DNA of 63,948 nucleotides, filler included, from Platydemus manokwari (taxonomy: Eukaryota): NCBI GenBank assembly GCA_037951405.1. It is 6 parts of 6 records of this genome, joined end to end, with 100 filler letters (N's around TTAATTAATTAA, not from the genome) between each part and the next. Parts side by side here need not be neighbours in the genome. Positions count along the whole stretch, not along the records: positions 1 to 15,303 come from JBBMOY011308094.1; 5 more parts are not named here. The stretch is one strand, 5' to 3'. The translations under genes were made by a program, and so were the position numbers. The notes under the pieces are model-generated. The model was given only the letters and a program-made list of their open reading frames with translations. It was not told where the DNA came from and ran no database searches. Shown piece by piece: positions 10,235-14,264 of this stretch (positions within the stretch are counted from its first letter, which is position 1; every line of letters begins with the position of its first letter).

Positions 10235-13200
10235 TTAGTTATTGAAAACTATCGGTTTGGATTTCCTTTTGAGGGGATTTTGACAAATTTTGATTGTTGA
10301 ATCTTTCCCGTCTGGCAATTTCATTTTCATTTTTACGCACCTTTTCGAGCTGCAACTATTGTTATTCCTACATGGACCGCTGATGCCTATCTCTCCGTAT
10401 TTATAACCATCTTTAGCACAGAATTTAAATTTTCCATTGAAGTAACAATAACGAGAGTAGCATTGCCAATCTCGTGAACAAGGTCCACCACCACCAATCT
10501 AATATTATCAAGAATGAAATCAGATATCACTAGATAATTACTTTTCCTAGTTGAATTGACTCTTTGGCACAGAAGCTCTCATTTCCAACTTTTACGCAAT
10601 AACCAGAGAAACACGAGTGATGATTCCTACATAGACTACCTTCTCCGATATAACCTAGTTTCTGTGTCGATTCCTGAACACAGTAACCGGTTCCATTTGT
10701 CTTGTGGCAAAAATTCGAGGCACAATAGAAATCATTTAAACATGGGCCTCCTCCTCCAACCTTTCCGCGAAATTTCGAATCTTTAGCGCACACTTTTTTC
10801 TTTGCATCCACTCTGCAACAGTAGCGAGACACACAATGAGCATTATTTTGACAAAATCCACCCCCACCAATGTAATTGTAAAAACTAGAGTCTTTGGAAC
10901 AGTGACCAATCTGGTAAGATTGTAATAAATAATATTGACATAGTATTACCTTCTCAATATTTTCTTTCACACACAATCCAGAAAAACATTCGAAATTTCT
11001 TCTACAGGATCCACCACCACCAACTTTACCTTGAAATTTAGATACTTTGGAGCAAACCTTTATAGGTCCTAAGTTGGCACACACACCAGAATAACACATT
11101 GCATCGTTAATACATTGACCTCCTCCACCAACTAACTTCATTATTGGTGAAACTTTAGCACAAAACTTTTGTTTTCTCACAGTGTCATTGACACAATAAT
11201 TGGAGAAGCATTGTGAATTTCTGAAGCAACGACCACCACTGCCTACATAGGAAGGTTTTCTCGATTCCCTAGCGCATACTTTTTGACCTCGATGCTTAAA
11301 ACAAACCCCTGAAATTAACATTAGATTAGATTAAGATTAGGTTTATACGTCGCTTTCATTTCTATTTAAATCTATAATTGAGAGATAACGGAGAGATAGA
11401 TTCTGAGCAATGAAGAATAGCAGTGTGAGCACCAATATGAAGAAATTTTATTATATTTTCTTCAATATGAGCTCATAATAATGATGAATGAATGATTTTG
11501 TATATCTGCCCACATCTAATGATATAAACACTTAATCTATTATCAGTCGTTAATAACGAATGAAACTAAATTAGACTTCTTCTCGAGCAAATAAAACTTC
11601 ATTTATCGCACTTCTGAAACTGTCAAGATATAAAAACCAGTGTTTATTCTTTTGTACACGCTTTTTGCGAAAAGATGAACATTCTACATTGTTTTTCGAT
11701 GCTAAATGCTTACAAAATATAAGCGTTTAAAATTTTACAAGCTTTGAGATAATAAATAATTATCTCAAAGATATGCAGCCGAATACGGTTATGTTTTCAA
11801 TTGGATCCCTTCGATCAATTTAAAATCCAAATTCTAGACAACGAAAGAGTAAACGATAGGCTAACAACAATAACAAAGCCGCCATCACTCAATAAGACTT
11901 TATCAGATGACTATCATGATCAACGAACCGCTAGCTATCACAATTTATGATTAGTCTCTCATCACGGTTCTACACCACGCATATCAATATGATAGTGAAC
12001 TAACAAAGAAAAACAGTATCTTTCAATCTCAATTGATTTGCACAACTTTGATTGTATTATTATTTATCAATAAGTTGTCTTCATTGATGTTATTTATTTA
12101 TCCTTAAATCGAAAATGTAATTCTTGTTCAATAATAAAGTTTTCGAATAAAATCTTTTGTTGTCTGGTTTTGTGGGAAGAATACGTAACTGAATCATTTT
12201 GATTGACATACCAACAAATTACATTATAAGATGGAAATGTTGAACAATCGGTAGATAAATTAAATCAATCCAATATTAAGCCTAAAATGAATTCCAACCA
12301 ATCAAGTTAGTAAATCAAAATAAAATTCAAGGTAATGGGGTCATCGGAAATACTCAACCTGGCTCACCGAAATCTCACGTTATCGCACCAGAAGCAATAT
12401 TCGGACAATCGACATTTTCTGCTACTGGCGCAAAAATTAATTCAGAAAATTTACTTGTGAATAGACAGATACATTCAGTCAATTCTTTAACATTATTTAA
12501 CTTACGAGTACGTTTATAAATACCGACACTTTCAGTATTGATCATAATTTATAAAATTCTCATTCCACTAATTCGATGAAAAACATTTATTAACATTATT
12601 CACAAAATAAATTGTTGGCAAAAATAATATTTGCTATTGGTTTTAAAATCAACTTAGAGTTTTTTCCACAATTCTTCGTTTTGATTTGGTATCAAGAAGT
12701 TCAACGGTTCTTTGTAATTTTTGACAAAGTTACTTTTACGTTATGATACTCATTTTTAAATTATTGTAAACATTTTTTATAATTTATTCTATTTGGATTT
12801 TAAAAATAACTTATTTAATTTAATTAGTAGTTCAATTTTATGAGAGTATAAAACAAAATTATATTATTTAACCTGAATATTATCGATAATAATTTATTGT
12901 TAATACCCTGTTCACGAATCATCGGAACATCTTATACAATCCATCAGTAGACATGTGGACCAAATTATTTATTCAAACTTATAATTTAGAAGTCAATTTA
13001 GAAGTCAGGAAACTCTGAAAGAAATTTGAATTGAATAAATAGTAATGATAGTCTTTTTTTCTGTTTTTATTTTACATCTGTATAGCATTTCGGGTTTGAA
13101 CTTTTACAGATATAAATTTCAAGACAACATGGTCCAAGTATAGAGTGACATGTTTATGGGAAACTCGCAACGATATGGTTTCATATCAATCATTTATCGC

Positions 13201-14264
13201 ATGCATTACAGTGATGTTAAAATCGCAAATTAAGTTTGAGAAATATATTTCAATAATTTTCCGGAGAATCTCATGGGACAATTATGACCGATTAGACATG
13301 AAAAGATTAAATGTTGAGAATGATGATGAATTATTATGCTTCATTTTGTCATTATTCGAATTGAAACAATTGATATCGATTTCGGCATCAAATTAATTAT
13401 GATCATTCAACCGAATTCAATAAGTTACATGGATTACTTGTTAATAAATTATGATCAAATTTAAAATTATTCATTTAAATTAGTCAAAAATATTTTGCAA
13501 AATAAATATTTGTCGTTTCTACGTGTAGTCGACCAATATTTAAACTTTTCAAAATATTCGACTTGAAATTATTTATGGGTCAAATAATAACCCACATCTC
13601 AAGAATTGACAAAACCCCATAAAAGATTATTCGAGAAATAAATTTTTCAATTAAAGATTCACCTGAATAGCACTGATCACTAGTTTTACAAGGACCACCT
13701 TGACCGATCTTGTCAGGTATTCTAGAATCTTTACTACAATGCTTTGTCATACCAGCGACTTGGACGCAATAACCAGAATAACATTGATCATCTTCTTTAC
13801 ATATACCTCCGCCTCCAATCTTTCCCTGAACATTAGAATCTTTTGCACAAAATTTCATATTGCTGTCCGGTTTAACTGGAACACACAATCCCGAATAACA
13901 GTTGCTGTCTTCGAGGCATCTGCCTCTTTCAGCAACGTAATTTCTAAATCTTGATTCCTTGGAGCAGAATTTAAAGTTGCCCATTTTCAAGCATAATCCC
14001 GAATAACATTGATCATCACTTACACAAATACCACCTTCGGCAATGGTTTTACGGCCAAATCTAGATTCGGGTGAACAAAACGAACGTTTTGAGACCTTGG
14101 AACAGAAATTGGACGAACATTGAGAATCTTTTTGACAACGATATCCACCCGGAAGACCAATTCCCATTGCATGATGGATACCTACATTAATGTCATAGAA
14201 AGACTCACAAAAATAATTTACTTATAATCGCTCCAACGAATAAAAGTACCACTATAGCATTCAT
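10235..14264 (-). CDS. Secreted cysteine-rich tandem-repeat protein (517 aa, 13 repeats of a 4-Cys module)
   Basis: Exons 14264-14222, 14181-13663, 11308-10950, 10910-10542 and 10498-10235. All introns are GT-AG and phase-consistent; total 1554 nt = 518 codons. N-terminus MNAIVVLLFVGAIISIHHA is signal-peptide-like. Repeat consensus (I/V)GxGGxCxxxxxC(Y/F)SxxCx7-10C(S/A)K(D/E)S. Confidence 0.9.
11787..12460 (+). mobile_element. Possible LTR plus start of a decayed gag inside intron 2 of the Cys-rich gene
   Basis: ~400-bp segment with imperfect inverted ends (GGTTATGTTTTC / GAATACGTAACT) and two AATAAA near its 3' end. It is followed by a gag-like 'APEAIFGQSTF..YWRK' fragment. No clear TSD or PBS. 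Confidence 0.3.

Follow-up and report, generated by a model that had tools for sequence, protein, structure and literature searches.

In the flatworm Platydemus manokwari, a single gene encodes a secreted protein of 517 amino acids with 13 tandem modules of four cysteines each, of which the module is predicted to be a disulfide-directed beta-hairpin (DDH), i.e. one half of the colipase fold. The gene lies on the minus strand and spans positions 14264-10235 of the window analysed here, a stretch of 63,948 nucleotides joined from six records of assembly GCA_037951405.1 (positions 1 to 15,303 come from JBBMOY011308094.1); all coordinates below refer to this window. What is new is the tandem repetition of a putative DDH, or half-colipase, module to 13 copies, which is without precedent, together with the small, unannotated animal family to which the protein belongs.

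Gene structure and splicing

The gene model was built by direct reading of the sequence, followed by a check by script. It comprises five exons, which add up to 1554 nt (517 codons followed by TAA), and four introns of 40, 2354, 39 and 43 nt, all of which run from GT to AG, have a GC content of 23-28% and have compatible phases. From the start codon onwards the features are as follows:

14222..14264, minus strand: exon 1, 43 nt (14 codons + 1 nt); start codon and hydrophobic signal peptide; donor A/GTAAAT
14182..14221, minus strand: intron 1, 40 nt, GT..AG
13663..14181, minus strand: exon 2, 519 nt; rest of the signal peptide, modules 1 to 4, and module 5 as far as C-Y-S-G (its first half)
11309..13662, minus strand: intron 2, 2354 nt, GTGAAT..TTTCAG; present once in the genome
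10950..11308, minus strand: exon 3, 359 nt; module 5 (second half), modules 6 and 7, most of module 8
10911..10949, minus strand: intron 3, 39 nt, GT..AG; in frame and free of stops; its removal gives module 8 the canonical x10 last loop
10542..10910, minus strand: exon 4, 369 nt; remainder of module 8, then modules 9-11; an extra vicinal Cys (CC) in module 9
10499..10541, minus strand: intron 4, 43 nt, GT..AG; contains an in-frame TAG
10235..10498, minus strand: exon 5, 264 nt; modules 12 and 13, basic C-terminal tail, TAA at 10237-10235

The ATG of exon 1, at 14264, is the earliest Met downstream of an in-frame stop located 16 codons upstream. Because intron 3 is in frame and holds no stop, the raw open reading frame (ORF) runs through it. 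The initial annotation had joined two separate ORFs into one spliced protein of 517 residues, and exactly this length is obtained from the five exons; the GT..AG introns and their phases argue for a single gene, as do modules 5, 8 and 12, which are interrupted by introns 2, 3 and 4, respectively, and reach canonical spacing only once spliced. This internal regularity of the modules is the sole support for the splice model, since none of the RNA runs searched for the gene sequence contains it. The single run in which the sequence was found is the genomic source, with the introns covered and no joints between exons.

The gene is single-copy in the 911-Mb assembly, in which protein and module-profile searches returned no paralogue outside the gene itself. 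The 26-module profile matched all 13 modules in this genome, with E-values from 1e-11 to 1e-3, and nothing elsewhere, which indicates that the modules are more than a chance pattern.

Modules, composition and age of the repeats

The exon translations bear out the 13 four-Cys repeats. Each module takes up about 37 residues and follows the spacing C-x5-C-x4-C-x7..10-C, with the exception of module 13, in which the last loop, already noted as longer, measures 19 residues. Modules usually open on the lead-in (I/V)GxGGxC and usually end on C(S/A)K(D/E)S. Four residues, x-S-G/N-x, separate the second Cys from the third, and Gly is frequent among them. The general DDH consensus has Gly or Pro at this place.

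The first 14 residues of the protein have a mean Kyte-Doolittle hydropathy of 2.72, and the highest later window of 19 residues does not exceed 0.92; the protein is therefore read as having a signal peptide and no transmembrane segment, as had been proposed, and the basic tail is found in the translation of exon 5. The mature protein carries a net charge of about +44 and is composed to a large extent of G (12.8%), K (10.5%), C (10.3%) and S (10.1%), being rich in Tyr and Phe as well. Of the four N-glycosylation sequons, three are located in the last loops of modules and one in the first loop of module 13. The protein has no catalytic motif.

The protein contains 53 Cys in total: 52 framework Cys and one extra in module 9 (10776-10883, minus strand), the only module with a vicinal C-C, located at the third Cys position and resembling in this respect colipase, Dkk and prokineticin. 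Given the odd total, one Cys may be free or engaged in an intermolecular bond.

The modules have diverged considerably from each other. Tandem Repeats Finder reported no tandem repeat in the DNA of the gene, and protein identity between modules ranges from 23 to 58%, with a mean of 39%. Third codon positions are identical at 35%, compared to a random expectation of 30%, and the synonymous divergence (dS) is mostly incalculable. Despite this saturation, all 52 framework Cys have been retained, and the Ser located two residues past the second Cys (CxS) is invariant in all 11 modules that could be aligned whole. Saturated synonymous sites next to conserved Cys and Ser therefore argue that the module duplications are old and that the pattern is under purifying selection, which agrees with the constraint on the fold that had been suspected from the non-identical repeats.

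Relation to known families

Searches were run with single exons, single modules or a unit of two modules. Judged by these comparisons, no Pfam family truly covers the protein, in line with the undescribed repeat family that had been suggested. The Colipase-like family (PF15083) passes its cut-off on exon 2 only, with 29.1 bits against 27 reached as the sum of four partial stretches; it scores 14.3 bits on exon 3 and 7.2 bits on exon 4, and no match was obtained on exon 5 or on the exon 3-4 read-through ORF. Four further families remained below threshold: UPF0506 (PF11703) with 21 bits on exon 2 (cut-off 23.2), Dickkopf_N (PF04706) with 12.5 bits (cut-off 25), EB (PF01683) with 11.9 bits on exon 3 (cut-off 24.3), and LEAP-2 (PF07359) with 7.9 bits (cut-off 27). 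EB and UPF0506 describe larger modules with 6-8 Cys, and only about 25 of their positions were matched. The EB threshold of 24.3 bits is marginally passed by some close relatives of the protein (26.8, 26.4 and 24.4 bits), whereas the planarian protein itself stays below it.

When compared with PDB sequences, the module profile placed prokineticin Bv8 first (E 0.012), with colipase at E 0.56. The two-module profile placed LEAP-2 first (E 0.032) and aligned cysteine-rich domain 1 (CRD1) of DKK4 across both modules (E 1.8); over the PDB profile searches LEAP-2 (2L1Q) appeared at E 0.032-0.37. In these matches Cys is aligned to Cys, and the signature G-x-C...C-x-S-G-x-C is common to both sides.

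A word-index protein search with exon 2 yielded ten candidates, none of them significant, and literature searches on planarian colipase-like or marginal-gland cysteine-rich proteins provided nothing usable. A feature match in the ESM Atlas, at best 0.87 to a Myxococcota cluster, was discarded as uninformative, its recognition being below the reliable range; the neighbours in this match carry Dickkopf_N.

Predicted fold of the module

The AlphaFold model of a single module, based on the 26-module alignment, has a mean predicted local distance difference test score (pLDDT) of 88.2 and contains one beta-hairpin with strands at residues 22-25 and 29-32. The two-stranded antiparallel hairpin characteristic of a DDH is thus present in the prediction, and the structural neighbours of the model are DDH and inhibitor cystine knot (ICK) peptides. 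In an exhaustive structural search the neighbours of the single module were without exception knottin/DDH peptides, with Z from 4.4 down to 2, LEAP-2 at Z 3.3, residues 8-42 of colipase at Z 2.7 and residues 182-214 of Dkk1 at Z 2.5. The two-module unit was modelled with a pLDDT of 87.6 and a predicted template modelling score (pTM) of 0.69, with the linker, at a pLDDT of about 92, among its best-predicted parts. Its best and only near-full-length match is a weak one to colipase (1eth_B; Z 3.4, root mean square deviation 4.3 Å over 65 residues), followed among the long alignments by Dkk1 (Z 2.6, 48 residues).

The colipase/prokineticin fold has been described as two DDH motifs arranged head to tail (bioRxiv 10.1101/485722). 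The planarian module appears to be a free-standing DDH hairpin with two disulfides, equivalent to the first half of the colipase/prokineticin/Dkk fold and to LEAP-2. This assignment draws its weight from the agreement between sequence and structure matches that are individually weak; Pfam, the PDB profile searches and the structural searches all point in the direction of the Dickkopf/colipase and knottin-like folds to which the core had initially been linked.

Comparison with known systems

Members of the colipase fold (colipase, prokineticin/MIT1/Bv8 and Dickkopf CRD2; PF15083, PF01114, PF21481) have G-x-C-x5-C-x-S-G-x-C...C in common with the planarian modules. However, their unit spans about 80-90 aa, contains 10 Cys and is divided into two subdomains connected by an inter-subdomain disulfide, whereas here 4 Cys are found in about 37 aa; the C-terminal subdomain and the inter-subdomain disulfide are both missing, and 13 equal units follow each other in tandem. 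LEAP-2 resembles the module as a stand-alone, cationic four-Cys unit with an I-G-x-x-C lead-in and C-x5-C-x4-C spacing, and its full spacing, C-x5-C-x4-C-x4-C, is common to the relatives at locus L007 described below. LEAP-2 is, however, a single vertebrate peptide made from a short precursor, while the planarian protein has 13 uncleaved-looking copies in which the last loop counts 7-19 residues. As for the Dickkopf N-terminal region (PF04706), DKK4 CRD1 can be aligned over two consecutive modules, but its 10-Cys pattern is absent here.

DDH and ICK toxins are, like the modelled planarian module, disulfide-pinned two-stranded hairpins, and almost all of the nearest structures belong to this class, among them Tst2, SOTI-III, Aps III and atracotoxins. 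The module lacks the additional disulfide that forms the knot in cystine knot toxins, and it does not stand alone as a venom peptide of one domain; the likeness is purely structural and below significance. In terms of architecture, progranulin and mussel foot protein 2 offer analogies, both being built from tandem small disulfide-rich domains. In secreted cysteine-rich repeat proteins (SCREPs; PMC6262176), too, a signal peptide precedes a series of small disulfide-rich domains joined by short linkers. This architecture is found in the planarian protein, which differs from toxin SCREPs in its domain type and in having 13 copies compared to the typical 2-3.

Relatives in other animals

An exhaustive profile search among 1.84 billion representatives yielded 116 hits with E-values up to 0.001, the strongest reaching 1e-23. 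None of the hits approaches 13 modules, and no orthologue of similar length came to light among the representatives. The full signature, including the linker C-x-x-D-S-x3-G-K-(V/I)-G-x-G-G-x-C, is shared by a small group of relatives, which a local two-module profile search sets apart from the other hits:

P0001, P0008, P0022, P0031 and P0114: animal data set SRR13325274, whole signature
P0020 and P0025: animal data set SRR29421764, whole signature
P0018: nematode Romanomermis culicivorax, whole signature

Modules of the planarian and of the other animals are 29-54% identical, i.e. as similar as the planarian modules are among themselves. It had been suggested that the protein may be lineage-specific, which does not hold, as the same module and linker occur in R. 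culicivorax and in the two animal data sets. Because of these close relatives, the family, uncharacterised and outside Pfam, is to be regarded on sequence grounds as present in at least one other phylum and not as flatworm-specific.

Several features of the relatives deserve mention. P0020 and P0022, which originate from different data sets, end in a C-terminal hydrophobic tail that may serve as a membrane or glycosylphosphatidylinositol (GPI) anchor; the planarian protein has no such tail. At L007:29-2075 (SRR13325274) a gene of at least three exons encodes a signal peptide, short-loop modules of the type C-x5-C-x4-C-x4-C and a long G/Y/S-rich low-complexity spacer. At L010:1216-2070 an exon of 284 aa contains about nine modules parted by T-rich and SG-rich mucin-like linkers. 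This exon is adjoined, on the opposite strand, by a gene for an adhesion-type G protein-coupled receptor (L010:3100-4190) with a 7tm_2 domain and a GPS-like C-x-C-D-H-L-T-x-F-A motif, which identifies the source of L010 as an animal.

Most of the 116 hits were not accepted as members of the family. These proteins come from metagenomes or prokaryotes, carry a generic C-x5-C-x-S-x2-C repeat and have neither the GGxC lead-in nor the D-S...G-K linker, and hits of this generic type score markedly lower with the two-module profile; P0097 was excluded for the same reasons. Long arrays of the generic repeat are found in P0003, P0006, P0009, P0041 and others, which are metagenomic and for the most part prokaryotic proteins, one of them from a Nanoarchaeia metagenome-assembled genome; some have metalloprotease-like N-termini. 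The generic prokaryotic repeat and the animal module could be connected by distant homology, or their likeness could be due to convergence.

Proposed function and alternatives

We tentatively propose that the mature protein is an intact, fairly stiff, polycationic rod that may well serve extracellularly, in a gland secretion such as mucus, adhesive or capsule material, as a multivalent binder or scaffold. The linkers, of about five residues, are confidently modelled and conserved across phyla. Since the AlphaFold model and this conservation suggest that the linkers are part of the fold, the mature protein is expected to remain intact, with the short linkers holding the 13 hairpins together as a disulfide-stabilised rod. 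Many equivalent hairpin tips, both basic and aromatic, would then be available to engage anionic polymers or surfaces. The extracellular role is suggested by composition, i.e. the charge of +44 and the richness in G, K, C and S, and by the mucin-like spacers in the relatives at L007 and L010.

Several observations weigh against this proposal. The absence of the gene from the RNA runs bears on splicing, tissue and function alike. A Foldseek search of the single module against the PDB gave nothing at E<=0.001, and the fold matches are all below conventional significance, with Z-values of at most 4.4 that are common for small models. The pTM of 0.69 is an indirect sign that the orientation of the modules is fixed, and the pairing of the disulfides as 1-3 and 2-4 is suggested by analogy with MIT1 and LEAP-2, in both of which the disulfides pair in this way. 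Furthermore, the number of Cys is odd, and the strong positive charge would equally fit antimicrobial peptides.

This last point leads to an alternative that we consider unlikely, namely that the protein is a polyprotein precursor from which the 13 modules are released as cationic LEAP-2- or knottin-like peptides of about 4 kDa, with an antimicrobial or prey-immobilising function. Besides the high charge, such a precursor would be consistent with the position of LEAP-2, a cationic four-Cys peptide, among the best matches in both sequence and structure, and with the prevalence of venom knottins among the nearest structures; moreover, cleaved multi-domain cysteine-rich precursors are known (PMC6262176). 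In about half of the linkers G-K directly precedes the next module, but in the remaining ones the residue before (I/V)G is Y, L, E or T, so that a uniform cleavage site is lacking. Dibasic pairs (KR/RK/RR/KK) are few and mostly located inside the modules, and the absence of regular dibasic sites in the linkers makes the release of mini-peptides less likely. The linkers are, in addition, predicted to be ordered, and the mucin-like and G/Y/S-rich spacers of the relatives are typical of intact matrix proteins. Cleavage at K/R-containing linkers, which had been put forward as an option, is thus disfavoured by the sites as well as by the modelled linker.

It seems very unlikely that the protein acts in signalling, as a ligand or antagonist similar to Dickkopf, prokineticin or draxin, with modules that bind the ectodomain of a receptor. 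Weak matches to Dkk1, Dkk4, Bv8 and draxin speak for it, but the 10-Cys units of two subdomains and the AVITGA N-terminus of prokineticins are absent, Dickkopf_N remains far from its cut-off, and 13 near-equivalent modules with a charge of +44 have no counterpart among the known ligands of these families. Finally, the silence of the RNA runs and the lack of an orthologue of comparable length would also fit two separate genes or a decaying, unexpressed locus, which we regard as very improbable, given that splicing of four GT..AG introns with fitting phases exactly restores three split modules, that the framework Cys have all outlasted the saturation of synonymous sites, and that the second ORF by itself has no signal peptide and has its only Met in the polypyrimidine tract of the acceptor.

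Other features of the window and the assembly

Positions 900-3300 of the window are occupied by a G-rich (GC skew up to +0.39) old dispersed repeat, of which at least 50 fragments, 65-80% identical, are present in the same genome, and which lies on the contig that carries the gene. Its ORFs contain no Pfam domain, and it is probably a decayed transposable element. A Ser-rich ORF of 220 aa at 4725-5387, on the minus strand, occurs once in the genome, was matched by no Pfam family and may represent an exon of a neighbouring gene unrelated to the one described here. An intronless mortalin/HSP70 ORF of the assembly is 90% identical to its counterpart in Dugesia japonica, 96% to a Logan protein and no more than 84% to proteins from other named species, in agreement with a triclad planarian as host. 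HSP70 loci are numerous in the assembly, and internal stops (TAA/TGA) in several of them point to many HSP70 pseudogenes or assembly fragments.

Significance

On present evidence, the gene adds one more protein to the uncharacterised secreted cysteine-rich repeat proteins. A more far-reaching reading, which we put forward as rather doubtful, is that these proteins represent an animal family of free-standing DDH units that is ancient and has so far gone unrecognised, and of which 13 copies have in the planarian been locked by their conserved linker into a rigid, polycationic scaffold of a new kind, with a mucus, adhesive or antimicrobial role. The free-standing DDH would in that case correspond to the presumed ancestral building block of the colipase/prokineticin/Dickkopf fold and of LEAP-2. 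If this is true, a natural half-colipase (DDH) unit exists on its own and has been multiplied 13 times, which would bear on the origins of the colipase, Dickkopf, prokineticin and LEAP-2 folds. The conserved, rigid linker would be of possible interest for the design of disulfide-rich multivalent scaffolds. For the planarian itself, an uncharacterised component would be added to secretions about whose adhesive, protective and predatory chemistry little is known.

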